Source: Dicyema japonicum (Eukaryota; Animalia; Dicyemida). Taken from it: 64,000 nt of DNA. The position numbers and the translations under genes were made by a program. The notes under the pieces were generated by a model. The model was not told the origin of the DNA. It worked only from the letters and a program-made list of their open reading frames with translations, and did no database searches. Below are positions 4,557-58,885 of the stretch, one piece after another. Each line of letters opens with the position of its first letter. The first letter of the stretch is position 1. The stretch is from the NCBI GenBank assembly GCA_011109175.1, contig RDEW01000015.1:1181481-1245480 (forward strand), written 5' to 3'.

Positions 4557-5480
4557 AAAGTTAATTGAACCAGAACACAATATCCAACCCATTGAAAACT
4601 TTTTAATCGAACTACAACGGAAACTATTAAAGGAGGCTATTCTACCGAGCTGCCACTATTTACCTCGGACAAAAAATTGGGAAGGAAGACATTCACCTTG
4701 AAGTTAAACAAGGTCGGCATCCCTTTCCACAGATGTCAAAGGATCTTGGGTGTGACAATTGATATGCATCTCTGTTTAACACCTCACGTAGAAAACATTC
4801 TATTGAAATGCGAGAAGAAACTGAACGTATTGAAAAGTTTATCGGGAATATGGAAGAGTGGTACTCACCCAGTCTTGATGAACGTATACAAACAATACAT
4901 CGAGCCATGTTTCTCATATGCATGCGCCTCGTGGGGTCCGTCCATATCTTGGACAAATATGAGGAAAATTGAGGAAATGCAAAAGAGGGCTTACAGAGTA
5001 ACGGAACGTTGGATTGGTGAAGATCATCGACCCGGACCTACGCCTCTGGAGGCCCTTATGAGACTTGACTCCAGATCACGGGAAATTGGCCCTGAAAATT
5101 CAGGCAGCCGTCCTGTACGTTCATGCGCGGGCACGAAGGAAGAACGACGGGCAAAGATGAGGTCTTTGTTAAAATGCATCGGGATCACGTGATAATTAGT
5201 TTTGTTTTACCGTGGTCTTGGGTTAAATAAATAAATAAATAAATTAAAGGAGGCTATTCTACCGAGCTGCCCTCTATTCCAAATACCATCGAATTATCTA
5301 CAATCATACAGAAATTTTGAGCCGATGCCATGTCCAATGAGAAGAGCTGTTCAGGATTCTCGACCCCGCTGGACTCGTCCTCACCTTTGTCGGTCTGGGA
5401 TCACTTAGTTAGATGAGAACTTTTATTTCTTTCTCTTTGACCCAGTGATCCTGGAAGTAATAATATAATAATAATATTGA
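4557..5480 (+). mobile_element. LINE family B 3' fragment interrupted by a family A 3' fragment (about 4655-5245)
   Basis: Family B sequence matches 55915-56190. The inserted family A (ORF 4677-5192, RT C-terminus ending GIT*) has a (TAAA)n tail and is flanked by a duplicated taaaggaggctattctaccgagctgcc. Confidence 0.85.
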
Positions 5481-6335
5481 AATGAGAGAAAAAACTGAAC
5501 GTATTGAAAAGTTTATCGGGAATATGAAGAGTGGTCATGGTTCTCCCGCTGTTTACCTGTGCTTAAGTGAATCTCTTCACACTGACATTCAGGGCACTGG
5601 GCAGAGAAGCCGGGTGGTATAGTGGTTAGGCGTCGGGCTAAAGTGACTTAGGTTACTGGTTCGATTCTCGCTGCTGTTCACCTGGTGGAAGGTTCTAGGC
5701 ATCTACGATGCTAAAAGGGTTTGACGAGTGACGCCGTCATCAGTGGATACTCACTGCGGAACTGGATTGTCTAGAAAGGACCCATACACAAGAAAAAGAA
5801 AAAAGAAGTGAAGTTAATTCCTTGGTTCAACGATTAGTTAAAATTAACTGTTCTTTACTTAAATAAAGTGTGTGTCCTGCTTATGCGGAGCTATAAATAT
5901 TATGGCTCTCGTGAAAAGGCTATTATTATTATTATTATTATTATGGAAGAGTAGTACTCACCCAGTCTTGATGAACGTGCACAAACAGTACATCGAGCCA
6001 TGTTTCTCATATGCATGTGCCTCATGGGGACTGTCCATATCTTGGACTAATATGAAGAAAATTGAGGAAATGCAAAAGACGGCTTACAGAGTAACGGAGC
6101 GTTGGATTCGTGAAAATCACCGAGCCGGACCTATGCCTCTGGAGGCCCTTATGAGACTTAACTCTAGATCACGGGAAATTGGCCCTGAAAATTCAGGCAG
6201 CCGTCTGTACGTTCATGCTCGGGCACAAAGAAAGAACACCGGGCAAAATGAGGTCTGTTTTGTTAATGCATCGGGATCACGTGATAATTAGTTTGGTTTT
6301 ACCGTGGTCTTGTGTTAAATAAATAAAAAAATAAA
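5480..6335 (+). mobile_element. LINE family A 3' fragment split by a SINE insertion
   Basis: Matches 4815-5240, 50760-51180 and 52200-52620; ends gggatcacgtga...gtggtcttgtgttaaataaa. Confidence 0.85.
5613..5942 (+). mobile_element. tRNA-derived SINE, subfamily A, full length
   Basis: Box A TGGTATAGTGG, box B GGTTCGATTC, core GACGAGTGACGCCGTCATCAGT, 3' hairpin gagctata-aatat-tatggctc and (TTA)n tail; near-identical copies at 28266-28565 and 51832-52046. Confidence 0.85.
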
Positions 6336-6989
6336 AATAATGTTTGACTTTATCACATATTCATGCGTTTGACTATGCATGGGAGGGCATCTGAACGACC
6401 GCGTGGCGCCATGTGGTGCTGCATGGTTGATTGGTTGAAATTTTCTGTTTTTTTTCTCTGTTCCTTCTTTCTCTTCCTATTAGAGTGGCTTCATGTGATC
6501 CATCTGACTAGGTGACGCCCAGTGCCTTGCTGGCAAGAAAAAAGATCATGGAGGGGTTTCCACGACTGCAAGTATAGACGTCTTTTACCCTTTATGTTGA
6601 TTCCGGATGAACTCTATATCTGTAGAAGTGGAAACTAAATACACTAAATTAGTTATTTACTTTAACTTCTTTTTCGGTGTGTCCGGGGTTAATAAAATAA
6701 ATAAATAAAATAACGTCTGATGACATCGGATCTGTCAGTCGTGGGTTCGAATCCGAAAGATGTACTTTTCAATCAAGTTCAATTCTCGTCATATAGATTT
6801 CACCCGTGAAGATGTTTTTCTGGAAATATTTGTCGTTTTTTAGTTTCTTAATATTATTAAAAAACTAATATGTAAGGATATTTCACTATAAAAAATTGGA
6901 TTATTTTACAAAATTTCAATTTTTTGATGGTTAACAATTTAAGAATAAAATTTAGGCGCCAAATTTTAATAATTTCACAGTGTTTACTG

Positions 6990-9900
6990 ATGGAACAACT
7001 ATGTAATATATAACTTCTAATATGTAGTAATAAAGTACCCAGAAATCTTTCCATACAATGATTTCAACTATATTCAAAAAGAATCTTACAAAGAAATGTT
7101 TCACAACGATTCTTCATTTATCCTTCGAGCGCCCACTGGCTCAGGAAAGACTGTAATTTTTGAACTGTCAATTTTAAAACTCTATGAAAGCTTATCAAAT
7201 GTGAGTGAGATTAAAGTCTTGTACAGTGAGCCATAATATAACCATGAAAGTTGCTCCCTTGAAAAGTTTATGCAATGAAAGGACATTGGACTGGCAAAAA
7301 AAGTTCAAAAATCTAAACTGTGTCGAAATAACTGGGGATTCCACTGATGCTGTGGATCTCGACAAAACTCAGATAGTCATAACAACTCCTGTAAGTTTCA
7401 TAATATATAAATAGGAGAAATTAGAGTTTATAATGAAAAAGAATTTTTCTTTAGAGAGTTAAATCTCATTTTAATAGACGAAGTAACTTTGTCATAATCC
7501 ATAGATTCATACAATTAGTTCTGAAAATCGAGGATCTGTAGTGGAAATTGTGGTAACCAGACTAAAAATGAATAACAAACACGCCCGTTTTATCGCCGTG
7601 TCTGCCACAATAGCAAACGTTGACGATGTATATTTGATAATTAGTTATAGATATCCCTCTGGCTTACTAATAGTGATGACAGACCTGCAAAATTCTATAG
7701 GTGAATGGTTGATCAAATGTTTAGATTTGACGAAAGCAAACGAACGATTCCTTTGAAAAAGGTTGTTCTCGGATATCCCGGATATGGTCCTGAGTTTAAA
7801 TTTGATATTTCATTAAACTATAAACTTGGTAATATTATTAAGAAGTATTCAGACTCCAAACAAACCTTAATAGTACTTATAAATGTAATAAATAGTTTTG
7901 TTCTACCAGAAAGAGCACAATAATGGCCGCCAATGTGCTATTAACTGAGACTTTTGTCACAAATTATGATAAATTGAACGAACTAAATTCATTTTCTAAT
8001 AAAATTAAGGACAAATCCCTCAAAAGTTATAATTTCTATTACAATAGGTTGTATACAAAGGGGAATTGGCTTTCACCATGCAGGACTCGACTATGAAGAC
8101 CGTCACTTAGTGGAAGAATTGTTTAAAAGCAGACTATTAGTGATCCTTCGTATTCTCCACTGTAATATATAGTCTGCACGTCAACTCTTGCTCAGGGAAT
8201 AAACTTGCCAGCTCATTTAGTTATAATCAAATCAACATTCCATTACAATAATGGCCAAATAAAACCATACGATGACTGGCAGATAATGGCAAATGATGGG
8301 ACGTGCTGGTTCGTCCCCCAATATGATGATAGTGCATGTGCCGTCATTATTACTAGAGATGATCTTGTAATGCAGTACCAACAGTTGGCCGATGAGGCTC
8401 AATCTTTAGAAAGCAGGTTATATACTCAATTATGTTAGACTAATGGACTATTTGGCAGAATATATTAATATGGAGGTCACCATTGACACAATAAGAAATA
8501 CTAATGAACTTCACGAATGGTTAAAGTCTACATTTCTTTATGTGCGTTGTGTTAAAAATCCCAAATTCTACGGTAAATTAATTTAAGAATTAAAGGACTT
8601 GGATCTTCTACCAGTTCTGTTGGTGAAACTAGGACAGAATTGATAAAAAGATGCGACAATATTATCAAGGAAATGACTAAAGAGAAAATAATGGAAATAA
8701 ATAATGATAAAATTAACAAAACAAGTTTATAAATAATTAAATCAAAAGATCTGGGGATTCTGATGGCTCGATACAATATAAGCTTCGCAACAATGAAAAA
8801 ACTCAAGATTATACAAGTGAATAACGGAATAGAAGGATTGGTATATTGCATATTTTATTAAAGATTAAGGTTTTAGTGGAAGTAGTTGAGTTTGCTGACT
8901 ATCCACTAAGGCGGAGTGAGAAAAAGATCCTCAATGAGCTGAACAAGTCTAAAAAGAAAGCTTCTATTCGTTTCCCAATCAAGGGAGGCATCAAGACAAC
9001 AGGCGATAAAATAAATTGGTTCCACAAACTAATCATTTTTAGCATAATTCAAGCTACCCTTGGATGCATTAAAATAGACGACTTTGGACTGTCAAAAGAC
9101 TCATTTAATATAATCAGGATAGGAAGCAGACTAAGCAGATGTTTGAGTTATATCTCAACCAAGGCTTATTCGAATTACTCTTTGAAATTAATAGTGACTA
9201 CGAGACTGTCAGGTATGCATCAATCCTAGCAAAATGCCTGCAGACGCAACTATGGGAAAATTCTATATATTTAGGCAAGCAATTACAAGGAATCGGTAAG
9301 AATAAGGATAAATAAAATTAGGTCATATATTGTCTATAACCCTGGCCAATTGTGGCCTCACTGATTTCACTAAACTATCAAATTCATCATCTGAACATCT
9401 TGAAGCTGTTTTATTATTATATGTAGTGGTTAGGCTTTGCATCGAAATCCCCCATTTGGTAAGTCGCTGTTAAAAAAGATCGGTACTGTTCCTAGGCTGC
9501 AGTTAACTCTTCTTCAGATGGTTGAAGTGATAATAATAAATAGCCGCAAAATATAAATTCAATCCAAATTATAATCAAATGTCTAAACTATGCAAATTTA
9601 AAAACTCGTGAGGGATTTATATATGTATTACTGGTTGGATCACAAAACAACCGATTATTATTACGTCGTAAAATCCAGTAATAAATCTTAAGATTATTTA
9701 AGTGGGAAAGTAATGCATAATGAAGGTGATTGGAGTACTACATTAACCGTACTTGACTCAAATGACTATCCGATTGAGATTAGTCTTATTTGTCTACATA
9801 TGAGTAATCAAAATTTACTATCTTAGGTGGAATCGATATTTTAGTTTCTTATTCTTCCCCTACAGGAGATACGAGTGAAATCAGCCATAAGAAAATTAAA

Positions 9901-14148: not shown

Positions 14149-15536
14149 CAGGGGTGGCCAACCTTTTTCGCTCGCGAGCTACTTTTTACATAGCAATTTT
14201 CTGGCGATCGACGTATACATTTTTTTGTATTTTAATAACATTTTTTTAATATTAGACTTTATTTAACAAAACAGGAGAACAAGAAGCAAACGCGTCAAAA
14301 AGGGGAGAATTTTTATTTTATAATAAAAAATTAAATGCGATTTTAGGCATTGTAGTTATCCTGCAATTATTTCGAATTTTGGAACATATAAGCTTATTGC
14401 TATTCTCATGCAATACTTAAGGTGGTCATCTGCTAAATGGGTCCTGTATTGAGATTTTATCATTTTCATGCTCGAAAATGATGTCTCGGATAATTACGTG
14501 CTTCCGAAGCACGAAAGAATTCGTTGATATGCATCAAATAAATTGGGATATTTTTCTGGAGAAATAAATTTCCACGTGTTGACATTTGAATTTACTTTAA
14601 AATGATGTCATTTTTTAGATTTATAATTTCTATTTGAACGTCAAAAATCTTTCTAAATTTTTTATAAACATTTTCGATGTGAGTCTTCATGAACGGAGAA
14701 GGAAAGAAAGTGCATAAAAGAGTAATTTTCTTGAAATCGCCAAATCTGTGATTAAACTCGTTCATTATATTTTTCTAGTACCATAACGAATTCTTTTACA
14801 AAGATTTTTAACAAGTTGTTTTGTGAATTCTTCTCTTCAATATTAGGAAAATTGATAAAATTTTCTTTATTTTTCAAATCATCGAATCAGCAGCTTCCAA
14901 AATATGAATTTTAAAATATTTATTTTATTATTTATTTAATAACCCCGAAAGGGAACACCAAGAAAGAAGGAGTAATCCAACTAATTAAGTGATCCCGGTA
15001 TGCCTCAACAGGATCGAGAGGTTTTTCCTGTGTTCCTCCAGAGTACCACGGCTTTCCTGAATAATGATTTAAAATATAAACATCAGTGAAAGGTTTTTTG
15101 TGCTTTGTGATAAGGCGAGTCACACGTAATGATGCAATTGTTACATATTTGGACGAATTAATAATTTTTTTCAAACTATATGTTGAGAAAAAAGATTTTT
15201 TAATTGTTCGACTTTCCCTATCGTAAAATAGAATTTAAAGGAAAATCATTATTGAAATCGGGATGTAGTGAATTAAAATGCCTACAAAGATTTTCTCTTT
15301 TAGGTAATGAAATAATTTATTGTATAACATGCATTTTTCCACGTGCATCGTAAAATATAGTCTTTTTCCTTTTGGCATTAAATTTATATAATTCACACTT
15401 TTTGCTACATTTCATAACATCGGCGTAAAAAATACTAACTTTAACATTGATAAATATTTTTTATTATAATTTAAGTACAAAAAAATAATTTCCAATTTGT
15501 ATATCAAACGTTAAAAATCAATCGATTGCACCCCTG
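14149..15536 (-). mobile_element. Internally deleted hAT DNA transposon (SPIN/Charlie-like)
   Basis: Termini CAGGGGTGGC...GCACCCCTG; 8-bp TSD ccctagga/tcctagga (7/8). Minus-strand remnant ...HRFGDFKKI...PF and KSQYRTHLADDHLKYCMRIAIS..VPKFE is a hAT dimerisation domain. Confidence 0.88.
14925..15060 (-). mobile_element. LINE family C 3' end nested inside the hAT element
   Basis: LLRHTGIT* ending; near-identical to 23905-24030; possible TSD tttaaaatat. Confidence 0.75.
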
Positions 15537-15704: not shown

Positions 15705-15900
15705 GTTAATCCATGACATTGAAAGGGTTCTTGACTTCTCGTTTTTTTCTTAATGTTTGTGTGAGAGTTCCAGAAGAACACTGATGACGGCGTCACTCGT
15801 CAACCCAAAGCATCATAGATGCGTGGAACCTTCAGCCAAATGGACAGCAGCAAGATTCAAACCAGAAACCTCATGATTTTGGTCTGGCGTAGCTTCTATC
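15705..15900 (-). mobile_element. SINE subfamily B
   Basis: Shares head, core and body with 52850-53160 (gaccaaaatcat...gctgctgtccatt...gacgagtgacgccgtcatcagtg...gagaagtc.agaaccctt.caatgtc). Confidence 0.7.
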
Positions 15901-16439
15901 AGAATTTTAATTACAATCGCCAGTCTCTCCGATGATTGTCAGAAAATAATTTCCCATCTTAGAGATAAATAGACAATCTGTCTTTGACCCGTATTGGACC
16001 TTGGTTTTTCATTCTTCGGGTTCATATGTTCTCGCTGTTCTCGTAGTGTATCCAGTTTTTTTTCTAGTTGGATCCGAATACCTTCTTGGGATTTATCTGT
16101 TCATCTTTTTCCCAAACAAGTTACCAAAAATTCTGATTATTTCGATAAACTTTAGTGCATTGATTTCCAGCTATTTTTCCATATTTTAGATACCTCCATC
16201 AAAAATTCAAAAATTTCTTAACGGATTTTATGTCCCTACATCGTCTCAACTTGCATTTAGTTTCAATTTTTTAGTTTTGTATTCATTTTTTCAAAATAGA
16301 ACTTTTTGCATAATTCTCCAAGTAGTTAATTTTAATTTCATTAACCCAGGAATCACAAAAGTTATAGTCTAAGATAAGTGACCCCGGTGTCCGTAACAGG
16401 CTTTCTCCTGCGGTTAGTTTAGGAGTCCTGTATTATTAT

Positions 16440-18230
16440 GATTATTATTATTAAAAAGCACTCCCGAGAAAACATAAAATTAGTTAAGTTTTCCTTGTTG
16501 CCGTATTCCGAATTATCCTCCCAGTCAGCTCCGACAATGATCTTCCGTTGCGCGCTAGTTCTCTAGGTAGTCCAGGTGTCCGCCATTTCCATTATAATGT
16601 CAGATGCTGCTCACACTATTGTAACACAGCGAATCAGATCTGATGGACTGAAAATCCGAAACCATAATGTCGGCAGACCAGTGGGAGGGTAAAAAGGTGG
16701 AATCTGCCAAACACTTCTGTTCATTGTACGGTCCTTTTTGTCTGTTGTAGACAGCAGACAGAGATGTCATATTTTGTTAGATCGCATCCTAGTTGGTGTA
16801 TCTTTTAAGGTTGTTTAAGTTTTCTGCAATTAAAAGATCCGGAGTGAACGGAGAAGTCGGTAAGGAATAAGAATAAGACATAGTGCAATAGAGGCGTCGT
16901 CACCACCTCAACCGAAAATCCTGGATTACTTTTCACAAAAGGGAAGGTTTCTTTTCGTATTTCGGTTGGCGTCCAGATATAGATTTATGTCTGGCCAGAG
17001 GGGATGGTCAATTAAAATATTCCTAATGGTTTTATCCATGTCAGGCATTAGGAGTCTCCTTAGTAAGGTGAATCCAATGACGCCATCAGAGGGGAAGAAG
17101 AGTATATTTAAACCAATTAACCACATTGCACCACATGGCGCACGCGGCTTGCCGGTTGAGATAATCAACACAGAGCTTGTAGTTTTCATCTTTTGAACAT
17201 TAAACAAGTTTTCCGAGATATATTTCCAGTTTATATTATTCACATTGTAGTCAATAAATACTAAGCGGTTAAAGACGGATCCCGCACACAACTCAATATT
17301 TTGATGGAGATGACTACAACCACACAGGCTAAGTCACATAATCAATATGCGTAGTGAATAATCCAAACCCCGGTATCTCATTGAAAAATGACTTATTATA
17401 AATTTCAAATTTTTGATTAACAATATTCAATGGTCATTTCACATCTTGACTTAATGCAGCCATAGTATGCCTTATAATTAGAATTGGATTAACATTATTC
17501 GTATTGAAGTCGTTGATAATCAATGGATAATGTCTTTTAAGTAGATTCTTTCGACCGTTATCCAGCCAATTGTTATTTCATCTGAACTTTACTACCAAAA
17601 AGTGTAAAGAGGGAAAGTTTGTTGGGCTTTTTGCAACAAGTCCTATCGTACCTTGGACTCTCTTCCGTTTTACTCAGCATATTTAAAAACCTCTAGAAAA
17701 CAATTATTTTGAAGTAGAGCTAATTAGGTCGATTGGACGGTAGCATCCGTACAATAGTTTTTTCACTTCATGTATTTCTTGACCCCGGGTGACGAGAGAA
17801 AAAAAACATGTCCAATTTTTAGACTTGCGTTGAACATGTTCCTGAGTACTTTTGGTAGTACTTCTGGGCTTTTTTGAACACCTTGATTTTGATATAATCA
17901 TAGGATCTATCAGGTCTCTTAAGCACAATCTTGTTTGCGATTAACTCCGCATTCTTCACTCACAAGATATATTTCCTAGAATGAAGATTGCGTTTATTTT
18001 GTATTCGCAGTCAAGAACTCAACTTGCTCTCATTCCAATCTTTATTGCGCTCCAGCAATTGCTTTGCAGATCACTTATTGTGTATGCGCAGGGATCCTGT
18101 AGATCTATGTATTCTCTTAGTTTAGTCTTTAGATTATTTCTTTTCATCACAATCTTCTTGAGGTGCCATGAAATTGAGACAACATCATCGTTATTGAGTA
18201 TATTTTTTCTGTCGAAGCTTTCCAGGTAAG
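16440..18230 (-). mobile_element. Degenerate non-LTR element with RT remnants and an RLE-like C-terminus, (TAA)n tail
   Basis: YRPIDLISSTSKII (RT domain 1-like) near 17720, TPDLLIAE/DISV RLE-like motifs near 16800; 16440-16915 is repeated at 60362-60845. Confidence 0.55.
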
Positions 18231-18349
18231 TTGGGTTAGTAAGCTGCTTTTGAGTCTCAGAATAAAAATGTTGAAGTTTAATGGCAGAATGAATGACACT
18301 TCACCTAAATGACACAAGAGACCATACTTCCCGTACGTCTCTTCCCACT

Positions 18350-20834: not shown

Positions 20835-21075
20835 ATTTATTTAGAATTGACAAGAAAGACAAAAATCAGAGAGAGAAAAACAGAAAAAAACGGAATCACT
20901 GAGAAAGACAAAAAAAACGTCAGAAAATCAGGTAATCCCAGTCAAACGAGCCATCAAACGTATTTATTCTCCCATTTTTCCCACTAACGTGCGAAAGAGC
21001 CTTCTTTCATCCCTGCAGAGAAATCCGATTAGGAGGGGAACTTTCTAACCAATCGACTTCCAAATTGATTACGAT
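20835..21075 (-). mobile_element. LINE family E 3' end
   Basis: IRLMARLTGIT* (ggg att acc tga) followed by a T-rich UTR containing gtgattcc and a taaataaa tail. Confidence 0.6.
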
Positions 21076-23667: not shown

Positions 23668-23904
23668 ATATACAATACACTTATAGTTACAATTTTAGCA
23701 TATAATGCCATTAACTGAGGGATATCCAGAATTGAACTGTCAAAATGTGCACGTACCATCAATGGTAAAAGATATCTGTTATTGGGGATCAATGAGCTCA
23801 AGGAAATAATTATATTTTTTTTGGGTCAAAAAATTATGAGATTTTGAAATTGATTTTTAATGAAACTTTTATTCAAAAAATAATTAAGTTTTCTATAATT
23901 AATT

Positions 23905-25651
23905 ATTTATTTAATAACCTCGAAAAGGGAACACCAAGAAAGAAAGAGTAACCAACTAATTAAGTGATCCCGGTACACCTCAAAAGGATCGAGAGGTTTT
24001 TTGTGTTCTTCCAGAGTACCCACGGCTTTCCTATATCGACGACGATCACCTTCATTAAAATTTGAAGAAAGGTGGGTTTTTTCCCCAATTTACGTGTATT
24101 TGAGGCTTCTAGTTTTGAATGGAAGAAACAACTTGTTCGTGACCATTACAGACCGATAAAACCGGAACTGTTGTTTTTGATTGAAACATGGTCAAGCATT
24201 GGGGGAAAGATCGGGAGGTAGATTCGTTTGACGTACCAATTTGGCCTGTTAGGGAATTGATCTTTACAAATTTGATATTGAAACTCCACAAGCTTATGAG
24301 GCACAAGCATACTCAACCGTCGGTTTTAGAAGTTGATTATACAAGACGACAGCGCACTCCCGTGACGCCTGGACATTAAGAACGATTTTATTATATTTAG
24401 TTTCCTGAGACCCTTTGTCATGACGTTCTTCACATGTTGAGAAAATATCATCAATGTCGGAAAGTCACTCCCAGAATAGTTGGATGAATCTGTAAAGGTA
24501 GAGAATAGTTGGATGAATTTTCCAAATCAGATGAAATTTGTTGATGATTCATCTTCAGTGAGTTTCTTTGCTTAATGAGAAGACGAGGTTCCGAGTCCAG
24601 AGTAGTCATGTAAGATTTGTAAACTGCACGTGGGACAAACAACTTTTCAGCTCGAAAGATTACATAGTTTAGATGGTCCACTGCTTTGTCGATGGAGCAA
24701 AATGAGCTGGGATCAAAATGTAATAGGTTATGGTTAATGAAAAGCTTGAATTGAAATTTCTTTTAGATCTTGAAGGTTGCTTTAATTCTACATGAGTTAT
24801 TGAATCGGATCAGTTTTAATATAATCGGATTATGATAACTATGAAAATCGTAGAAGACGTTCCATGAAATCATCGGGTAATCCTAGAGGAAGCAAAAGAT
24901 ATGTCGGGGAGGTTGGGTTGTCATTTCTTCGTACTGGTGTCCTTATGAGGATGTTCGAGTAATTAAGAATCACCATTTTTTCGAAAGAGTCGATAATTAG
25001 ACTCCCCCTCTTGTCTGCCGACTAAGTACTGAACCATTGGGAATGTTTGGCATTGAAATCTCCACATAGAAACACATTTCGAATTTTTTGTAGTTTGTCG
25101 AGCTTTGGAACATATTTTATTACAACAGGATCCCGGCGGCGGAATGTAAATGTTGAATAGAATAAGATGTTCTGACCCATTAATAAGATCAATAAAAATT
25201 TGTTCTGCGGTCCTGTCGTGTAGAATTAAATCATCCACATGCGAGCTCACATCGTGGAGGATAAACCGTTTTTAATAATGGTAAGTAAGCCGTCACCACG
25301 TCCAATACGGTCTTTTCTGATAAAGATGTATCCAGGAAAAAGGGGTTGTACTTTGTAGAAAGTTTTGACTCCTGGATAAGGCAAATGTCAATCTTGTGCT
25401 TCGATAATAGACATCGTAACTCCAAAATCTTTGTTTTTATACCGTTAGCATTGAGTTGCATAATAACTAGTGGTTTTGGTCAGGTTTTGTTCAATATCTC
25501 CAGAAAGAACTAGAATCCAGAGGAACAAACAACATCTCGAGTTTCCAGCTGAGGTATACCATCCAGGCATACGTGGAGTCTGGATGGGGAAGAGAAAATG
25601 GTTCATTTTGATGTTATTCGACACTGAGCGACCATGAAAGGTGAACCACAT
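23905..25651 (-). mobile_element. LINE family C, internally deleted: 2A-like peptide, APE, late RT, 3' end
   Basis: LVLSGDIEQN(PGP)-KPLVIMQLNANGIKTK..DICLIQESKL, FNIYIPP, then a jump to PTILGVTF and the gggatcacttaa terminus. Confidence 0.8.
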
Positions 25652-26081
25652 GACGCCACGCTAATATTTTTCAAACAAACAGCTATAATTAATGTAATCA
25701 CGTATTATGATTATTGCTTAAATTATTCCAAAGACTAAGGTAAAACCAAACTAATAATTCCTTGATCCTAACAAATTCCAGCAGAATCTTCACTCAAGCA
25801 CAGTGATCCAGAGGACGTTGTTCGGGAGAACTGAAGTCGATTGCAGAACTCGTCGTCAGGGGACGAAGTTTTTTCCCAGTGGAATGTATGGATCCTTTTG
25901 AATGCTGAACAGGAATTTGGACGTTTCCTGAGTAAGATGGATCCATTGAAGCCACCAGAGGGAACGAAGAGAAATCTTCAACAGATAACCGCATGCACCA
26001 CCACCCGACAGTCATTAAAAGCCGTATCAAATTATTCGAGCAAAGATTTGTTAGTCAAAAATTAAATTAATGATTATAAAA

Positions 26082-27650: not shown

Positions 27651-28265
27651 TTTAAAAATATAGTTTATTCCCTTTTATTAAATAAATATTTTATAAACAA
27701 TTTATAATTTTATTAAAAATTATATTTTATTCATGATTTTCACAAAATATTATAAAAAACATAAACTTATGACCTATCGATAGCTAATATGGCTCTTCGT
27801 AAAGTTAAATATTTGGTCATTTACACTGTATAAGATTATAGTCTTCTAAATTTATAAAAAGTTAATCTCAAATTATAATTTTTAAAATAACTAATTATCA
27901 ACTTGTTGTTTTATCATCTATGATTAGCATGAAGTGTCACGTAGTACCTTACCAAAACCATAATATCCTATTATTATCGAACCTAATTATCTGGCATTTC
28001 ATTTATTAACTAAAACCATAATCACGTGTCATTATATAATTTTAAAATGATCTAATATTTCATAAAATTGTGAGTATTGACCAAAAATTAATAAAATATA
28101 TAAGGTTCCTCTAACTATTATTGAAGTCCTTATTGAACAAGGCTGTAGTTCTACCAGTACCGTGTTAGTAATAATAAACTAAGCGGCTCCACCTTGATAA
28201 AGAAAACGTGCTATTGTTTAAGGAAAGTATGTATTCTAAGATCATTAAATCCCAAAAAACACATA

Positions 28266-28565
28266 TAATAATAATAACAGCCTTTTCACGAGAGCTATAA
28301 TATTTATAGCTCCGCATAGGAGGATACACACTATATTTAAGTAAAGAACAGTTAATTTTAACTAATCGTAGAACCAGGGAATGATCTTCACTTTTTTTCT
28401 TTTTCTTGTGTGTGGGTTCCGCAGTGAATATCCACTGATGACGGCGTCACTCGTCAAGCCCTTTTAGCATCGTAGATGCGTGGAACCTTCCACCAGGTGA
28501 ACAGCAGCGAGAATCGAACCCGTAACCTAAGCCACTTTAGCCCGACGCCTAACCACTATGCCACC
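28266..28565 (-). mobile_element. tRNA-derived SINE, subfamily A, full length
   Basis: Near-identical to 5613-5942; perfect 3' hairpin gagctata/tatagctc; (TTA)n tail. Confidence 0.88.
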
Positions 28566-31599: not shown

Positions 31600-31790
31600 G
31601 TTTGACATTAAGACCAATTTTCTTCCATCAGAAAATTCAACCAGGAGATACCAGAGGATCACTCGTCCACTGCGTGCTTGTGTTGGATCGAGGTAAGACC
31701 ACCGGGCCAAGCTGAGAGCCCTATTGTAATTCGCCGGGATCACATAATTCTTGTTTTTGTCTTTAACTATGGTCTTTGGAAATAAATTTT
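31600..31790 (+). mobile_element. LINE family F 3' end
   Basis: LRALL.FAGIT* (gggatcacataa) followed by tggtcttt and ggaaataaa. Confidence 0.6.
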
Positions 31791-32189
31791 AAAATTTCAA
31801 TTTCAACCTATACATAAATTTGAATAATACCCCGACACGTGAATTAGATAAGATAGAGACTATTTCGCAAGTATCAGAATACTTGGACTCTAACTTATCA
31901 AGCATCAATGCTGGGTTAGTTCCCTAATCTTTCGTGATTCGTACATTAAATACACCTCAAACTTAACTTGATCTCCAATAGCATAATTTTACTTGCAACA
32001 ATTATTCTATTCATCCGTCGATAGTATTTGTCGTCACCCACAATTGGTGTTAACTTAAAATCAAAGAATTATACAAAATTGTAATTTATAAATTAAAAAC
32101 CGCTATTAATTCGTTCCTAACGACTCTTACTACTAAACCATTTTCAGATTCATTGAGAACCATGTTTAATGAGAAAAGTTCTAAACGGG

Positions 32190-34249: not shown

Positions 34250-34720
34250 TACCACCCTAAGGATCACTGGGTCTAAAAAAAGAAGTAAATGTTCTCAACT
34301 AACTAAGTGATCCCAGACCGACAAGAAAGATGACGAGTCCAACGGGGTCGAGAATCCTGTACAGCTTTTTTATCGGGCAAACTTTCTGTATGATTGTAGA
34401 TACTTTGATAAAGTATGGAACAGGAAGTAGCTCGGTAGACTATCCGCCTTTAAAAGAAATTTTTAATGGGGTGGATTTTGTATTCTGATCCAATTAACTT
34501 TATTGCAGCCTCCTGGATTGGGGATAGTTTCAAGGACAAAGAGCGTGAAACCTGCATTGCCCACGAAGGACATGCATGCGTCATCGTGGGTCGGATAAAT
34601 TGTTCTTAAACTGTAGCAAGGCTCTCAGTTTGGTCTTTAAGTGTTCTTGAGAGTTCTTTTAGGATTCTCATTTTCTTCAGAGTAGAACATACTTTGTTCT
34701 CAACATGTCGGATAAAAGAG
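34250..34720 (-). mobile_element. LINE family B 3' fragment, diverged
   Basis: Matches 5270-5460 and 55740-56190, including gggatcacttag...gacccagtgatcc. Confidence 0.75.
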
Positions 34721-38894: not shown

Positions 38895-39210
38895 TTTTGA
38901 TTATTAAGCTGAACAACATTCCACCCAGTCCCTTTGACCACCTTATTGAGCAAAACGGCAAGAGCTTCTTGACGTTAACCCTCCAGCAGGAACTGTCGTC
39001 GACAGTCCGTCCTGTGTTAAGTTTCCAGAAGCACATCACCCCAGTTAGCTTTTTTACGAACACTGTCCCCTGCCAATACCGTAAATATGTTGGGTCAAAA
39101 GTCCAGCATCGGAGAAGCTGAGAAAGCTTTTCAGGATTGTCGGGATCACCTAATTAATTTCAACGAGATTAACTACTGGTGTTTTTGGGTTAAATAAAAA
39201 AATTATAAAA
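38895..39210 (+). mobile_element. LINE family G 3' end
   Basis: LRKLFRIVGIT* (gggatcacctaa) followed by ggtgttttt and gggttaaataaaa. Confidence 0.6.
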
Positions 39211-39249
39211 AAAGGCGGAAATAATTGGACATTTTTTAGGATATTTTAA

Positions 39250-49329: not shown

Positions 49330-51180
49330 GGCTCTCAGCTAGACATAACTGGAATTAAAAGAAAAATCAGGGAACTCCGCTCACTCCTGGCTTGTCAAAA
49401 GATTAATGTTGCGATGATTCAAGAGACCAAACTCTCTTTTAATGACCCTACCCTTACATTTCCAGGATACAAAGCAATCAGAAAGGACATAGAGAAAAAA
49501 GAGGCGGAGGACTGCTCACTCTATTCAAAAAGAACTTGAAATCAGAGACATCTCCTCGGAAGTGAGGAAACTTGTTGAGGATGATGATTTAGCAGAAATA
49601 ATTGGAATCTCGCTCGGGAAAACGGAAGGAAGACTATGCCTTGCGAATATCTACGTTCTGCTTACTGGTTCCTGCCCAAAGAGCTATGTTATGCCAAACC
49701 TATCAAGACTTTTTTCCTTCGATGAGATCAGCATCTGCGGGGATTTGAATGCGAAGCATCCCTTATGGCTATCAACTCAACTAGCTGACATGAGAGGGAA
49801 ACTATTATCTCAAACGGACTCCTTAACTATATTGAATGATCCATCGAGAAAATAAATAAGGACACCACTGAGAGAGACAGATAAACCTACCTCACCGGAC
49901 GCAACACTCTGTTCATCGTCGCTTTCATCAAAAATTGATTGGTCAGTCCTCTACGAACAAGAAGCGACCATAATCCAACTGTGGTGAAGATCAAAAGAGA
50001 GGCCAACGTGAGGGGAATTCCTAGCAGCTACAATTACAAAGGTGCTAACTGGAAATTGTATCGCAAAATCTCAGAAGATAAATTGAAGAATTGTTACTTG
50101 GATAGCTTCAGTTTTCTAGAGAATGCCATCAGCTACTTTACCCAAATAATCTTGAAAGCAGGATCAAGGGCTATACTTAAACATTAGTCTTATGTTCCAT
50201 TAACAAGGCCTTTGATTCTATTTCGAGAAAAATATTATCAAAGAAAATTTTCCAGTCTGAGATCCCGGGGAAGCTTAAACTTTGGATAACAAATTTCTTA
50301 AGTGAACGGAGGGGACGTGTATGCCTCGGAGGACTGAAATCAGTCTCGCGTCTTCTCCCAAACGGTGTCCCCAAGGATCTCCTTTATCTCCCGCTTTATT
50401 CAATTTATACCTGACCGACCTCCCGCCACCGGAATCCAATAACGATGTTCTACTCTCATATGCTGACGACATTGTTTTGGCTTCGCGTGATCGGGATATC
50501 CAAAATGCTACAGAAAGATTACAAATTAACCTGGACCGACTCAACGCCTGAGTAATGAAGAACCGACTCACGGTAAATTCCAGAAAGTCGGTCACGTCTA
50601 TGTTTACTTCGGACAAAAGGTTGGGGAAGAAGACTGTCACCTTAAAATTGGACAACGTTGAAATCCCCTTCAGCAAATGTAAGAAGATCTTGGGCGTGAC
50701 ATTGGATACCAACTTATGTTTGTTGCCACACGTGGCAAACATTGTTCTGAAGTGCGAGAAGAAAATCAATGTATTGAAATGTTTATCTGGAATATGGAAG
50801 ACCGGTACCCACCCGGTCTTGATGAATATCTACAAACAATACATTGAACCATGGTTCTCGTACGCGTGTGCTTTGTGGGGACCTTCATTATTATGGACGA
50901 ATACCAAGAAAATCGAGGACGTACAAAAGAAGGCCTTCAGAGTCACGGAGCGGTGGACTTGTGGGAGACACAGAACCGGACCGACTACTCTGGAGGCCCT
51001 CATAAAACTAATCACCGGCATTCGGGAAAATGGCCCTGCAAATACAGTCAGCCGCCCAGTACGAGCTTGTGTGGGCACGAGGGAAGAGCACCGGGAAAGG
51101 ATGAGAATTTTGGTGGAACGCATCGGGATCACGTGATAGTTAGTTTGGTTTTACCGTGGTCTTGGATGTTAAACAATAAT
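49330..51180 (+). mobile_element. LINE family A (I/Jockey-like): APE, partial RT and 3' end; N-terminal RT blocks deleted
   Basis: QLDITGIKRK, MIQETKL, CGDLNAKHPLW, SPDAT, SDHNP; jump at about 50180 to NKAFDSI, GCPQGSPLSPALFNLY, SYADDIVL, ILGVTLD, ERIGIT*. Confidence 0.9.
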
Positions 51181-51189
51181 TATGGAAAC

Positions 51190-52625
51190 AGGCACTAATA
51201 CGGCTAATACTAAAACCAGGAGGACCGAGAGATGACCCAGCGTCTTTTAGACCGGTGTCACAACTATCTCCCATGTCAAAAATCCTGGAGAAGATTGTGC
51301 TCGGGAGAATAAAAGAATTTTTATTAGAGAGCCCTTTTTAACATGGATTCAAAAATGAGAGATCCACGTCTACATACTAGCAAACATCAACCGACTGCAT
51401 TCGAGTAGGATTCACAACCAACCCAAGACACTATAAACAGTGCTCTGCTCGAGGAAGATTCTATCGAAAAAAATATTTCAATCGGAGATCCCAGGGAAAC
51501 TAAAGCTTTGAATCACTAACTTCCTAAGTGGACGAAGAGGACATGTTTGCCTCGGAGGTCTGAAATCAATCTCACGGCTTTTTTCCAACGGAGTCCCTCA
51601 AGGATCTCCTTTATCACCTGCTCTGTTTAACCTTTTTCTGGCTGATCTCCCGACTCTTGAATCTGATAATTATGTTTTATTTTCCTATGCGGATGATAGT
51701 GTGTTGGCTTCGCGAGATCAGGACATCCAGAAGGCTACAGAAAGAATACAAATTAACCCGGACAGGCTTAATGCCTGGATAATGGAAAACCGGCTCATGG
51801 TGAATGCAGAGAAGTCGTCTAAGTCACTCTTTAATAATAATAATAAAGCCTTTTCACGAGAGCCATAGTATTTTATAGCTACGCATAGGCAGGACACACA
51901 CTTTATTTAAGTAAAGAACAGTTAATTTTAACTAATCGTAGAACCAAGGAATGATCTTCACTTCTTTTTTTTTTCTTGTGTGAGTGTCCTTTCTAGACAA
52001 TCCGGTTCCGCAGTGAATATCCACTGATGACGGCGTCACTCGTCAAACCAACAGACAAAAGATTGGGAAGGAAGATAGTCACCTTTAAGTTAAACAAGGT
52101 CGACATCTCTTTCAATAGATGTCAAAGGATCTTGGGTATGACAATTGATATGCATCTCTTTTTGACACCACACAGAGAAAACATTCTATTGAAATGCAAG
52201 AAGAAACTGAACGTATTGAGAAGTTTATCGGAAATATGGAAAAGTGGTACTCACCTCGTGCTGATGAAATTGTACAAACAGTACATCGAGCCATGTTTCT
52301 CATATGCATGCGCGTTGTGGGGTCCGTTTATATCTTGGACAAATATGAGGAAAATTTAGGAAATGCAAAAGAGGCTTACAGAGTAACGGGGCATTGGATT
52401 TGTGAAGATCATCGACCCGAACCTACGCCTCTGGAGGCCCTTATGAAACTAGACTGCAGATCACGGGAAGTTGGCCCTGAAAATTCAAGCAGCCGTCCTG
52501 TACGTTCATGCGCGGGCACGAAGGAAGAACACCGGGCAAAGATGAGGTCTTTGTTAGAATGCATCGGGATCACGTGATAATTAATTTTGTTTTACCGTGG
52601 TCTTGGGTTAAATAAATAAAATAAA
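51190..52625 (+). mobile_element. LINE family A, second copy (RT and 3' end), split by a SINE
   Basis: FRPVSQLSPMSKILEKI, GVPQGSPLSPALFNL, SYADD, and after the SINE the ...ECIGIT* terminus. Confidence 0.88.
51832..52046 (-). mobile_element. SINE subfamily A, 5'-truncated, inserted in a LINE
   Basis: Matches 5720-5940; LINE sequence resumes on both sides. Confidence 0.85.
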
Positions 52626-52629
52626 AATC

Positions 52630-52815
52630 GAAGAATCGCCTAATTACTATCAGTGAAAAGGCCGTCGTGACTGTGAAGGTCCAGTCACTCGACCGATACG
52701 TGCTTGTGTGGGGTCGAGAGAGGAGCATCGGGCCAAGATGAAATCCCTGCTAGTGCGTGCTGGGATCACGTGATTAGTTATTTTGTGTAACCGTGGTCTC
52801 TGGTGTTATTATTAT
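52630..52815 (+). mobile_element. LINE 3' end (family A-related)
   Basis: LVRAGIT* (gggatcacgtga) followed by cgtggtctc and a (TTA)n tail. Confidence 0.65.
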
Positions 52816-52849
52816 TAATATTTATAATAGTGACGAATTTTTTGATGAC

Positions 52850-53160
52850 TCAGTCAGTGTAATAAGTTTGGACCAAAATCATAAGGTCCTCAGTTCGAAT
52901 ATCGCTGCTGTCCATTCAGTTGAAGGTTTCACACATCTAGGATGCTTTGGGATTTACGAGTGACGCAGTCATCAGTGTTTCTCTTTTGGAATTCAGACAA
53001 ACAAAAAGAATGAGAAGTCGAGAACCCTTACAATGTCTTGGATAAAACTAGATTAATTAACATTACTGTTCTTACTTTTAAAATAAAATGTGAGTTCGGT
53101 CTAAGGTGAGGTTTAAGTAATGAAAACATTACTTACTTCTTATCGGGAGGGCTGTTTTTA
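52850..53160 (+). mobile_element. SINE subfamily B
   Basis: Box B-like agttcgaatat, core acgagtgacgcagtcatcagtg; body shared with 15705-15900. Confidence 0.65.
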
Positions 53161-54180: not shown

Positions 54181-54369
54181 TAATAATTATTTTACATTGT
54201 TTTTCTTTTAGTAATATATATTGAGATAAATGTTAATCACTGATCGGCTTCACTCAAGTGACCACAATGTGTGTTTTTGTTTTGAGAAGGAAGTCATGGA
54301 AAATTTGACAAATTGACGATCTTTGTTTGTGTTGATGATAAGTATCTGATTTCTTGTTAAGTCAACGGA

Positions 54370-55060
54370 TCTGTAACGATTGAGTGTACGACTTTTAAGT
54401 AATTTCTTGAACGTAGGGTTTACAGTTTCAAGTTTGTTGATTAAGAATTGATAATTGTATCATGGTTCGTGCTTGTGTAGATAATCTGGGATATATTTTT
54501 AAAACATATATTCAGAATTCTCCAATATCCAACTCCATCTTCATTAATTTTAAAGATCGATCATTGAACAGTTCAAAAAGTTCTTCATTTTCTTTAACAG
54601 ATAATTGTTCCGACTGTGACACAAGAAAAGGATTTCGCATCTAAAAAATATTTAAGAATTATAACCCAATCGAATTTTTCAGTTTCTATGTCTGGAAAAT
54701 AGGCATCAATTTTGTTTTCCAAAATTATTAAATGTTCATTAATCAGTCCCTGTATTGCTTCACCATTATATCCTTATTATAATTAAAATATAAAATAAAC
54801 CATTAGAATTAGGAAACATAGTATAATCGCCATCTAAAACTCTTTTTCTTCAAAAACTGATTTTCATTTTTAAGGAATTCAATTTGTCTGTCGGCGATAA
54901 AATAGTTTCAGAATTTCCCTGCATACTTGCATTAACATTACTTAATATTTGTAAAATATCTAACAAATAGGCAAGTTTTATAGACCACAATGCATTCTGA
55001 ATTTTTTAAACAAATTCACAAAAAAGTAAATAAATTTATTCTAATTTTTATTTAGCTGCC
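54370..55060 (-). mobile_element. hAT (Charlie/Buster, ZBED5-like) transposase remnant
   Basis: DILQILSNVNASMQG, MFP, INEHL..LENKIDAYFP...DWV, RNPF...EELFELFNDRSLK...EF...YPRL. Confidence 0.7.
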
Positions 55061-55129
55061 AGCACACTAGACATTGTCTCGCGGCACACTAAGTACTAGG
55101 AATTCGTGTGGATGTGAAGGTACTATTTA

Positions 55130-56195
55130 TTGGGTTCCTGGATTTATTAACAGGCAACCAGATACAAGGATATCACCATTGTAAGTTCATCAAGACTCTA
55201 CCATCTCGCATTCCTCCCCAGGACCCCAAAAATCGTTGTATGTGATGAAAATAGACAAATATCAATGATGATCATGTTGTGGTAAGAGGGTAGGTCAAAT
55301 CTGACATTTCAGCTAATCAACGATGCGATGGAAGGTGAGCACATCGAAAGGTCATGGGACGTGTTTGATTCCCAGGACGAGTTCCATTTCTAGTGTGTTG
55401 ATTAGAAATGGAACTCGTAATGAAAACTGTCTAATCCTCTCCTATGCCGACGATATCATTCTTGCCTCCAAAGACAGAAGCATTCAATCAGCGACTCAGT
55501 CCGCTCAACAAATGCTCGACAAGCTGGAACTATGGCTCTCGAAGCGGAGACTCGACACATCAGCAGCAAAGTCTTCTGTCACGCTGTTTACCACTTACAA
55601 AAGACAGCTCTGTATCGAACCAAAAATCTTTATGAAGAACGAGGCTATTTCTATTAACAAAACACCGAAGATTCTGGGAGTAACCTTTGATCAGGGACTC
55701 ACCTTTATCCGGCATGTTGAGAACAAAGTAACTTCTGCTCTGAAGAAAATGAGAATTTTAAAAGTGCTCTCAAAAACACTTAGAGACCAAACTGGTGGCC
55801 TTGTCACGATTTATGAACAATTTATCCGACCAACGATGACGTATGCAAGTTTTTCGTGGGCAATGCAGATTTCACGATCTTCCTCATTGAAACTATCCGC
55901 AATCGAGGAGACTGCAATAAGGATAATTGGACCAGAACACAAAATCCAACCCATTGAAAATTTCTTAATCGAATTACAACGGAAACTCTTAAAGGAGGCT
56001 ATTTTACCGAGCTGCCCTCTATTCCATACACTATCGAATTATCTACAATCATACAGAAATTTTAAGCCGATGCCATGTCCAATGAAAAGAGCTGTTCAGG
56101 ATTCTTGACCCCGCCGGTCTGGGATCACTTAGTTAGATGAGAACTTTTATTTCTTTCTCTTTGACCCAGTGATCCTGGGGGTAATAATAATAATG
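55130..56195 (+). mobile_element. LINE family B: 5' remnant, late RT and 3' end
   Basis: ORF 55323-56108 LSYADDIIL, PKILGVTFD, YEQFIRPTMTYA; terminus gggatcacttag...gtgatcc and (TAA)n. Confidence 0.85.
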
Positions 56196-56404
56196 ATTGA
56201 GGTTGTTCAGTATGACAAGGTGTTCGAGTTCCGAGGTGACTTGACGTCTGATGACTGGGCCGAGTATCATAGTGGGTCATTAGCATTAATGTCACCGCAA
56301 ATGGTAAAGTTATTTACGTTGAGTAGGAATTCCAAGCTGGGACGGTAGCCATTCTGGCAGCATGACAAAGGGGGAGTATGCATATTAATAAAAGTGTAGG
56401 TAGT

Positions 56405-57310
56405 GGACATAAATTAAAATTAAATTTATTAACCAAAAACCACCTTCATATCCAAAATGAGAAAATTCAGGTGATCCCGGCCTCCCAATGCAGTCTTCGT
56501 ATTTTTTCCTGATGTTCAGACTGTGTTCCGGCACATTTGCAATAAGGACGGGGTTCATGCACATGAATCTTCCGCCAAAAAATTGCCCTAGTTGCATTAA
56601 CCATATTTTCAAAGCTTTTGGACAGGATTTCCTTGCAAGAAGACTTCCGCTGAATTTTATGGATCTTGGTTAGATTCGTCGCTGCAAGGTTTGTCCTCTA
56701 AGCAGCACATGCATAACCAATTGCAGGTTCAATGATTGTAGAGGTATCCTATCCATTTAGGCCTTTGGAGCCTCTTAGATTTCTCAGAAAAACCTTCATT
56801 GAGTTAATCTTTCTCGTAAAGCCGTTATTTCTTTCAAAATGGGTTGAAAAGGTTAAGAAAGTGTTGAAGGTAACTCCGAGGATCTTCTGGATTTTGTTTT
56901 GTGGAATAGATTTCCAGTCTAACTTGACGTCAATGAATAGCTTCCCCACTCTATATTTGAATTGAAAAGGGTCAAACTAACTTCTCCGGACTTGTTCTCA
57001 ATTGATTTCCATAAAGCCACAAACTCAGATTATTCAGGCTGTCCTGTAATCTTCGCAGCGCGTCGATAATACCCACATCCTTCGATGCAACAACTATATT
57101 GTCCACGTAGGACAGTAACATGTCGTTGTCACCATGTGGAATTGGTAGGTTATTCGTCATAATTGATTGAATAAGAGGGGAGATAATGGGGAACCCTAAG
57201 GAAAGCTATTTGATAATAGTCTCGATATGGAACATCGATTACCATGGCGTACTCATTCGCGACGACCCCTCAAGAAATTCTCCAATCAAACGTTGATGGT
57301 GATGGAAATC
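56405..57310 (-). mobile_element. LINE family H, RT and 3' end, degenerate
   Basis: FP.GSPLSP, LSYVDNIV, KILGVTFN; ends RLHWEAGIT* followed by ggtggtttt and ggttaataaa. Confidence 0.75.
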
Positions 57311-57373
57311 ACCTAATAAAAATTAAATATAAATATAAATTAATAAAAAATAAAATTAATTTAAATTAAATTG

Positions 57374-57991
57374 ATGTGCGATAATCTGAATGAAATTAGT
57401 GATTCTGATTTTTTGACCATTTTAAATGTACGATAATCTTATTTTAGACAAGAATTATCAAGTCGGCGTCAATAACTATGATAGAAAAATAGATAAACTG
57501 TACAAATTGCTTAAATCAGTTAGTTATCAAATAAAACATAGTTGGTCAGTGGTACCCTCAAACAATCAAAGCTAACATCTCAGGCAATGTTACTCGGTTT
57601 GACAGAAGAAAAGGTTTTTGTTTAATTACAACAGATCATTGTTTTGACTTCTTTTTGGGAGTCTAATCGTGATCGACTTGCAAAGGATGCACTAAATTTG
57701 AGTAAAACGAACGAATTCAGTGTAAGATATAGTATTTACTTCCAGGTAAAGGATTTGCGATATTCTCTGTCAAACCAGGTCGGAAACGATCTTGAAGGGG
57801 CTACCAAACTAATGGACTGTGTGATGCAGTTCAATTTGGAGGTAATAAGGGAACTTATATAGAATGAGGGGAACAGCTTTGAAGTGGAGTTTGACTATGA
57901 ACGACTGCAGAGATTGTATGATCAGGTCATTCGTTGAATTTGAATGTAGATTGAGGTTATTCAGGAACAGCTTAATAATTTAGTTGATTGA
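57374..57991 (+). CDS. COMMD10: COMM-domain protein, most similar to COMMD10; 6 introns of 20-24 nt
   Basis: Spliced C-terminus VKDLRYSL...CVMQFNLENEGNSFEVEFDYERLQRLYDQIEVIQEQLNNLVD* parallels COMMD10 [26 protein letters not shown]; one indel near the first intron. Confidence 0.65.
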
Positions 57992-57999
57992 TAGTTTTA

Positions 58000-58885
58000 C
58001 TAATTATTTTTGATAATTCTTTTAATTTCTTAAGTGGACGATGAGGGAAAGTGTGCGTCTGAAATAAGAGATTCAGATCGAGATTGTTACACAATGATGT
58101 ACCCCAGGGATCTCCTTTGTCATCAATACTCTTTAATTTGTTTCTGAATGATCTCCCCGTTCCTATGAATAATAATAACATGCTACTTTCCTATGCCAAT
58201 GACATAGCTGTCGCATCTATGGACGTAAATGTCGAACATGCTAAAGAAAGACTACAAGGAATACTAAATAACATATATGGATGGTTGTGCGAAAATCGAT
58301 TAAGTGCATGTTCCGGAAAGTCAGCAGTCACTCTATTCACTAAGAATAGAAAGATGGGAACGCAAACAATTGATGTCACGTTAAATGAAATACCTCTACC
58401 ACAAAAGAAATCGCAGAAGATACTGGGAGTAACTTTTGATACTTTCCTCTTCTTCTCAGCCCATGTGGAATCCATAATATCAACCTGTGCAAAGAAGATC
58501 AATTTTATAAAGCCTTCCTTTGGAATTGTGGTGGAATTTATCCGCCAGGTGTCGGGACCCTCTATAAGCAGTATATCGAGCCAACAATAGGCTATGCATG
58601 TGCTACGTGGGAATTTAACCTTGCGGCAACGAACCTAATAAAAATTCAAGAGATCCAGTCAAAACAATAAATTTACTGGAGAAATATACGGATAAAGAAA
58701 TTGCCCCCAGAACACTTGAGTCTATCTTGGAGGCAATTTCAGAAGAGGTGTGAAAAAAGACCCCCGTCCGTATAGAAAATGTGAGGGGTCACGGTCGGAG
58801 CATCGAGAAAAAATGGCCCGATTATTGAGATGCCGGGACCACATGAATAATTATTTAGTGATTAAGACGGTTTCTTTGGTTAAAT
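58000..58885 (+). mobile_element. LINE family I, RT and 3' end
   Basis: DVPQGSPLSSILFNLF, LSYANDIA, KILGVTFD; ends ggg acc aca tga followed by ggtttc and ggttaaataataa. Confidence 0.8.

Follow-up and report, generated by a model that had tools for sequence, protein, structure and literature searches.

Divergent LINE families in a Dicyema japonicum contig share a 3' hairpin whose 5' arm lies in the last codons of the open reading frame

Introduction

How can a mobile element keep a structured RNA signal at its 3' end when one strand of that structure also encodes the end of its protein? The question is raised by a 64,000-nucleotide (nt) stretch of the Dicyema japonicum genome (GenBank assembly GCA_011109175.1, contig RDEW01000015.1, positions 1,181,481 to 1,245,480 of the forward strand; 37% G+C), which is referred to here as the window and is numbered from its first letter. 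It holds 19 decayed copies of long interspersed nuclear elements (LINEs) from about a dozen related families, and these have in common an RNA hairpin at the 3' end followed by a TAAA or TAA repeat tail. An earlier note on this DNA had listed 16 such ends and had proposed that they carry a clade-wide recognition signal that encloses the stop codon. Here we describe the anatomy of the hairpin, the constraints on its two strands and its relation to the 3' ends of other LINEs, which suggest that it is the recognition site of the elements' own reverse transcriptase (RT).

Results

The ends and their reading frame

All 16 of the LINE 3' ends listed earlier are present in the sequence, and each has the motif GGG-(A/G)(T/C)(C/T)-AC (16/16). 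Ends are named here by the first G of this motif, which for those on the minus strand lies at 14996, 16385, 20939, 23971, 34314 and 56478, the earlier note having given the motif's last base. The sequence GGGATCAC is found in 14 of the 16 ends and occurs 14 times in the window, as compared with 0.8 +/- 0.9 times in shuffles, and the looser GGGRYYAC occurs 24 times against 6.1 expected. A covariance model built from the 16 ends recovers all of them at E<=1e-2 and adds three further decayed ends, at 2961 (+), 6637 (+) and 25769 (-).

If the GGG codon sets the frame, Gly-Ile-Thr (G-I-T) with TGA, TAA or TAG right behind it is encoded by 13 of the 16 ends. Of the other three, 20939 has ATT as its Ile codon, 58835 encodes G-T-T-stop and 16385 encodes G-V-T, with TAT where the stop would be. 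The stop usually does follow the Thr codon immediately, as had been reported. Over the 17 ends that are readable, the stop codon lies directly 3' of the 5' arm in 15. The LRxLLxxxGIT-like helix that was said to precede the ends can be recognized in most of them as a K/R-x-L-L-x-x-x-G-I-T peptide, but not in family B, whose C-terminus is different (...RWTRPHLCRSGIT).

The 19 ends, with position, strand and family, are as follows.

5178..5246, plus strand: family A end; 5' arm TCGGGATCACG (G-I-T, then TGA), 19-nt loop, 3' arm CGTGGTCTTGG, (TAAA)5 tail
6269..6338, plus strand: family A end; copy interrupted upstream by the insertion of a short interspersed nuclear element (SINE)
52563..52631, plus strand: family A end; (TAAA)n tail
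51121..51192, plus strand: family A2 end; 65% amino acid identity to A; endonuclease and RT pieces kept at 49336-50944
52758..52827, plus strand: family A3 end; (TTA)n tail
31733..31803, plus strand: family A4 end; Thr codon ACA, stem weakened
5393..5479, plus strand: family B end; 12-bp stem TCTGGGATCACT/AGTGATCCTGGA, 36-nt loop, (TAA)n tail
56117..56196, plus strand: family B end; RVT_1-matching open reading frame (ORF) of 261 amino acids (aa) upstream
34258..34318, minus strand: family B2 end; 76-78% nt identity to B
14920..14997, minus strand: family C end; GGGA.TCAC/GGTG.TTCCC with a U-U mismatch, (TAAA)n tail
23895..23972, minus strand: family C end; in frame with a 2A-like remnant and endonuclease at 25651-24962(-)
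16322..16388, minus strand: single end s1; GGGGTCAC (G-V-T, no immediate stop); A-to-G change pairs with U
20890..20941, minus strand: single end s2; GGGATTAC; stem runs through the UGA stop; tail about 55 nt further downstream
39139..39213, plus strand: single end s3; Thr codon ACC pairs with GGT
56409..56482, minus strand: single end s4; 14-pair stem, ACC/GGU
58831..58903, plus strand: single end s5; GGGACC (G-T-T); U-to-C change pairs with G
2957..3018, plus strand: extra end x1, from the covariance model; GGGATCGC (G-I-A-stop); A-to-G change pairs with U
25704..25779, minus strand: extra decayed A-type end x2, from the covariance model; AGGATCAAGG/CCTTAGTCTT
6627..6711, plus strand: extra decayed C-like end, from the covariance model; 5' arm mutated, 3' arm and (TAAA)n tail retained

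The terminal codons pair with a strand just ahead of the tail

In single-sequence folds, the terminal codons of nearly every copy pair with a strand 17-36 nt downstream, and a duplex search finds a helix of 8-14 bp in each of the 18 ends analysed. The 5' arm usually starts 1-4 nt ahead of GGG. Between the 3' arm and the tail there are 0-10 nt in 17 of these ends and about 55 nt at 20939, and with that exception the partner strand is where the earlier note had put it, downstream of the stop and just before the repeats. When each end was compared with 300 dinucleotide shuffles of its own downstream sequence, the duplex was stronger than the shuffles at p<=0.01 in 10 of 18 ends and at p<=0.1 in 14 of 18; for the family A end at 5178..5246, the values are -14.7 versus -5.8 kcal/mol. 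The same eight core pairs are found unaided by RNAalifold on a plain MAFFT alignment, and in an 11-pair structure 85.7% of cells pair, as compared with 33-48% if the partner strand is slid by 1-3 columns.

The tails that follow are short tandem repeats, (TAAA)n, (TAA)n or (TTA)n, reached through a junction that reads GG-(G)-TTA-AATAAA or GGG-TAATAA, and all four of the (TAAA)>=3 arrays in the window sit after such a hairpin. No family in Rfam matches the hairpin.

A near-frozen coding arm and a flexible partner

The terminal Gly codon is GGG in all 17 readable ends, whereas GGG makes up 16% of the 43 Gly codons elsewhere in the same LINE ORF fragments, which bears out what the earlier note had said of this codon. 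In these fragments ATC accounts for 37% of Ile codons, and all four Thr codons are used about equally. Across the full 16-row alignment, two-sided changes are seen at one pair only, that between the Thr wobble base and its partner (G-C 5, U-A 3, C-G 2, U-G 2, A-U 1). A second count, in which each lineage appears once and the pairs are read off the individual duplexes, gives GC 4, CG 3, UA 2 and UG 1 at this position; in it, the two bases before GGG (-2 and -1) form C-G, U-G or U-A pairs, the GGG bases switch between G-U and G-C, and the U of AUC has G or A as its partner. All four single substitutions in the 5' arm (A>G at 16385, C>U at 20939, U>C at 58835 and A>G at 2961) preserve pairing.

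The idea that the partner strand changes along with the 5' arm was therefore overstated, as that arm is nearly invariant. Covariation is real at the Thr wobble pair but thinner than had been claimed, the remaining pairs showing only switches between G-U and G-C or between U-G and U-A. The proposal of a dual constraint, on protein and on RNA, fares better: the Gly codon is frozen, the Thr wobble base covaries and the substitutions in the 5' arm keep their pairs. The coding arm is near-frozen because it also encodes the conserved C-terminal G-I-T, and the structure is upheld by the non-coding 3' arm together with one free synonymous position. The frozen GGG-AUC and a partner strand specific to this genome's lineage are direct evidence of constraint at the level of RNA.

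The hairpin is conserved across deep lineages

By blastn, the ends fall into group A (5181, 6273 and 52566; 87-92% identity), group B (5397 and 56121; 86%), group C (14996 and 23971; 92%) and nine singletons. Three of the singletons (51125, 52762 and 31736) have 68-77% identity to A, and a fourth, 34314, has 76-78% identity to B. This makes about 12 groups and about eight deep lineages, so that an earlier estimate of about ten divergent families was a fair one. The proteins of A and A2 are 65% identical. Those of A and B share 34% identity over 108 residues; their C-terminal tails agree in G-I-T alone, and their nucleotide sequences are unalignable upstream of GGG. Loops and bodies had been described as unalignable between families and largely are, except that the first ~10 nt after the Thr codon (T-R-R-TTAGTT) can partly be aligned among A, B and C.

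Some of the ends lie head to tail: a B-type fragment begins right after an A tail (5181-5480), and A3 follows another A tail (52566-52830). The arrangement fits insertion beside existing A/T repeats.

The elements are compact LINEs with an endonuclease and a reverse transcriptase

The 261-aa ORF upstream of the family B end 56121 (55323-56105) matches Pfam RVT_1. A homologous-protein search with it gave matches at 41% identity or less only, and an exact database look-up gave no identical protein entry; the same kind of search with a 194-aa C-terminal piece gave no match. Pieces of apurinic endonuclease (APE) and RT lie upstream of several ends in tblastn searches with full-length relatives, for example at 49336-50944 ahead of 51125, and the endonuclease is of the Exo_endo_phos_2 type. 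At 25651-24962(-), a 2A-like remnant (...VLSGDIEQNL..., its NPGP lost) is followed by an AP endonuclease, and since both are in frame with end 23971, this copy appears to be a LINE of about 1.8 kb that is internally deleted and keeps both ends. An exact [ED]xNPGP 2A motif is absent from the window, this degenerate remnant being all that is left of one.

Distant relatives share the peptide and lack the stem

The full-length relatives are metagenome elements found with the C-terminal piece, and they encode a 2A peptide (NPGP), a PHD-like finger, an endonuclease, an RT, a CCHC motif and a C-terminal ...FL.LDEGIT. In the nearest of them, whose contigs measure 3.3-4.4 kb, a single ORF of about 1,100 aa holds the 2A, finger, endonuclease, RT and CCHC parts. 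A G-I/V-T terminus is present in 25 of 120 relatives, and that of the wider clade is ...FL...G-[ILV]-[TML]. At six loci, which represent five distinct elements, the terminal codons are GGA ATC ACT, GGC ATA ACC (two loci), GGA ATA ACC, GGA ATT ACC and GGG GTG ACT. The Gly codon is thus GGA or GGC in the four distant elements that end in G-I-T, and GGG in the one that ends in G-V-T. A stem equivalent to that of the window is absent from these five elements and from about 50 metagenome loci, where the only hairpins are those ahead of a GGCTA-repeat junction. The junction in the ~50 distant relatives (L005-L078) is almost always (G)GCTA and then (CAA)n, (AATC)n or (AACT)n, often just past a short hairpin and sometimes a few nt from the stop.

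This speaks against a signal that is clade-wide in the broad sense, as had been proposed. Because G-I-T occurs in distant relatives with other codons and without the stem, it is an old protein motif, and, among the sequences compared, the hairpin formed on it is seen only in this genome's lineage. The layout common to the group therefore seems to be a hairpin that abuts a G-Y/K-TA junction and a 3-4-nt repeat, and in the window elements the 5' arm of this hairpin is placed inside the ORF.

Two relatives have helices of their own near the ORF end. In L003 (2140-2250), a 9-bp helix begins with the Thr wobble base and the UGA stop and ends ~20 nt short of a (CAA)n tail, its fold not being significant, and in L087 (3460-3490) there is a 6-bp mini-hairpin, GGAAUU-ACCUG-AAUUCC, around Thr and stop. 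These cases are anecdotal, if suggestive; folds of L001 and L003 have z-scores near zero.

Discussion

In our judgment there are about three chances in four that the ends described here are the RT recognition hairpin and slippage tail of compact APE-RT LINEs, most likely CR1-like ones. The copies are 5'-truncated or internally deleted versions of compact single-ORF LINEs encoding both enzymes, and the hairpin and its short tandem-repeat tail, such as (UAAA)n or (UAA)n, would act together as a cis-acting module at the end of the RNA. The ORF supplies the 5' arm of this hairpin with its final codons (GGG AUC ACN), and its stop codon sits at the stem top. If the comparison with the stringent-type LINEs of the CR1 and L2 groups holds, the element's own protein may bind the hairpin while the tail anneals to, or slips on, the nicked target, and in this way target-primed reverse transcription would start. 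The stem itself is kept because the non-coding 3' arm, and the Thr wobble base where it is free, can change.

The fit to a stringent-type recognition signal, already suggested in the earlier note, lies in the position of the hairpin beside the repeat tail. In CR1, a 3' hairpin and a microsatellite are kept across subfamilies and have been proposed as the RT recognition site (PMC4316615, PMC8665684). The likeness is close, CR1 being an APE-RT LINE in which a hairpin immediately precedes a tail of short tandem repeats at the extreme 3' end (Suh et al., 2014; Suh, 2015; Galbraith et al., 2021), conserved across many subfamilies whose copies are mostly severely 5'-truncated. Unlike CR1, where the repeat unit is the 8-nt ATTCTRTG, the window elements have TAAA or TAA, they are compact with a very short C-terminal region, and their 5' arm is inside the ORF with the stop at the stem top, an arrangement for which we found no CR1 description in the searchable literature. 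The L2 elements UnaL2, ZfL2-1 and ZfL2-2 also combine a 3'-terminal stem-loop with repeats (Kajikawa and Okada, 2002; Hayashi et al., 2014); mutants of the stem-loop lose retrotransposition, and the L2 ORF2 protein binds the tail via two tail-binding regions, one conserved and one variable, of which the latter (vTBR) reads the loop (PMC4176376). The shared stem and family-specific loops of the window could parallel these conserved and variable regions in zebrafish L2, although L2 stem-loops are located in the 3' untranslated region (UTR), away from the stop codon. A third comparison is with the 2A-headed single-ORF LINEs of invertebrates (CR1, Crack, L2, Rex1 and Ingi; Odon et al., 2013) and with Vingi, which the window recalls in its 2A-like remnant before the APE. 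The nearest full-length relatives, which share this architecture, differ from the window elements in having a C-terminal region about 140 aa longer and in ending in GGCTA with (CAA)n or (AATC)n, without the GGGAUCAC stem. A hairpin and repeat tail conserved across subfamilies is therefore a kind of signal known before from CR1 and L2, to which the overlap with the end of the ORF adds a modest twist; our search of the literature found no account of this hairpin, or of any LINE 3' hairpin that has terminal codons as an arm.

Several observations weigh against this interpretation. The two-sided covariation is confined mainly to one pair among about 8-12 related lineages, and the other wobble switches are easily made by transitions. 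The Rfam model of the UnaL2 3' element has no match at its gathering score anywhere in the window, and none at E<=10 over 5100-6400. No SINE in the window shares the LINE module, the tRNA-derived SINE found there ending in GGCTA(TTA)n without the stem. Finally, none of the LINE copies in the window is intact.

Other readings deserve consideration. There might be no RNA structure at all, G-I-T being kept for the sake of the protein, with a complementary strand that either arose by chance in a U-rich UTR or belongs to a linear motif conserved as such. It is true that the G-[ILV]-[TML] found in the wider clade, at the C-terminus or close to it, is an old protein motif and that U-rich UTRs make G-U pairs cheap, but the freezing of GGG against its 16% background, a Thr wobble base that varies freely with its partner tracking it, duplexes that beat their shuffles and the halving of pairing on a one-column slide of the partner together make this very improbable. 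Somewhat less remote, and still doubtful, is a hairpin that acts mainly in translation, where, by enclosing the stop, it would either use termination and refolding to place the new protein on its own RNA (cis-preference) or tune the efficiency of termination. The stop codon directly after the 5' arm in 15 of 17 ends, a 17-36 nt loop that would keep the 3' arm clear of a ribosome sitting on the 5' arm, and the stem that runs through UGA at 20939 are all compatible with such a role. This is an argument from geometry alone, however; distant G-I-T relatives do without the stem, and an effect on translation would not conflict with RT recognition, to which it could be added. It is tempting to speculate, as the earlier note did, and we put it as a long shot, that termination is coupled to capture: the ribosome would have to melt the 5' arm in order to read G-I-T-stop, on its departure the stem would snap shut beside the just-released protein, which would bind it, and a dozen families that have the stem in common but differ in their loops could live side by side without mobilising one another. 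If true, this would provide a simple physical basis for the cis-preference of LINEs.

It is also conceivable, if unlikely, that unrelated LINE lineages acquired the 3' module from one another by template switching (tail swapping) and did not inherit it from one ancestor. The similarity between A and B begins exactly at GGGATCAC, their C-terminal peptides differ apart from G-I-T, and in an RT tree of 139 columns the two are parted by sequences from other organisms. Yet the non-monophyly that this tree suggests is unsupported by the approximately unbiased (AU) test, under which a tree holding A and B together is as likely (p=0.51); the loops differ from family to family, which speaks against a recent swap, and the K/R-x-L-L-x-x-x-G-I-T helix is common to most lineages. 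Vertical descent from one stem-bearing ancestor is the simplest reading.

As to the clade, CR1-like is the most likely label for the RT-recognition LINEs of the window, judging by the type of endonuclease and the architecture of the relatives. RNase H is present in Ingi and absent in Vingi, and the close relatives, which have a single ORF and 2A without RNase H, fit Vingi as well as they fit a CR1-like group. The combination of 2A, a PHD-like finger and a single ORF is known from CR1 and Crack elements, including mollusc CR1s (Odon et al., 2013, PMC3708506). In a 2026 repeat annotation of Octopus vulgaris, the active LINE superfamilies are RTE, Dong-R4, CR1, L1-Tx1, Hero and R2, with CR1, represented by 13 families, as the only Jockey-type superfamily among them (PMC13282606).

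None of this changes the picture of how such LINEs work. What the window offers is a natural example of one sequence under constraint from both protein and RNA and, for annotating and counting these LINEs, a clean and easily scored 3' signature that consists of GGGATCAC, the partner strand and a TAAA or TAA tail.

Neighbouring repeats

The tRNA-derived SINE has A-box and B-box-like motifs and is present at 5613-5941 (+), 28265-28565 (-) and 51832-52049 (-), with partial copies at 15779-15871 (-) and 52893-52977 (+). ARAGORN reports no tRNA genes and leaves this SINE uncalled. Its 3' end consists of a small hairpin, AAGGCTA and (TTA)n, and the GGCTA-repeat junction matches that of the distant 2A-LINE relatives and not the G-I-T stem. 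The copy at 5536-5941 interrupts the family A LINE copy that ends at 6273, with a target duplication of ~14 bp, and the copy at 51832-52049 interrupts the one that ends at 52566. Just 5' of the SINE copy at 5613-5941, at 5548-5602 (-), is a 55-nt match to eukaryotic large-subunit ribosomal RNA (Rfam RF02543, 40.5 bits, below the gathering score, E=7e-8), which lies outside the SINE family as the other copies show it.

A second repeat family has copies that are 93% identical at 16420-16640 (-) and 60350-60570 (-), and the short LINE end 16385 comes directly after its tail. At the 3' end of this family a TAA, replaced by TTA in one of the copies, lies within the hairpin GGAAAAC / GUUUUC, after which come TCGGGAGTGCTTTT and (TAA)n; this may represent another stem built around a stop codon.

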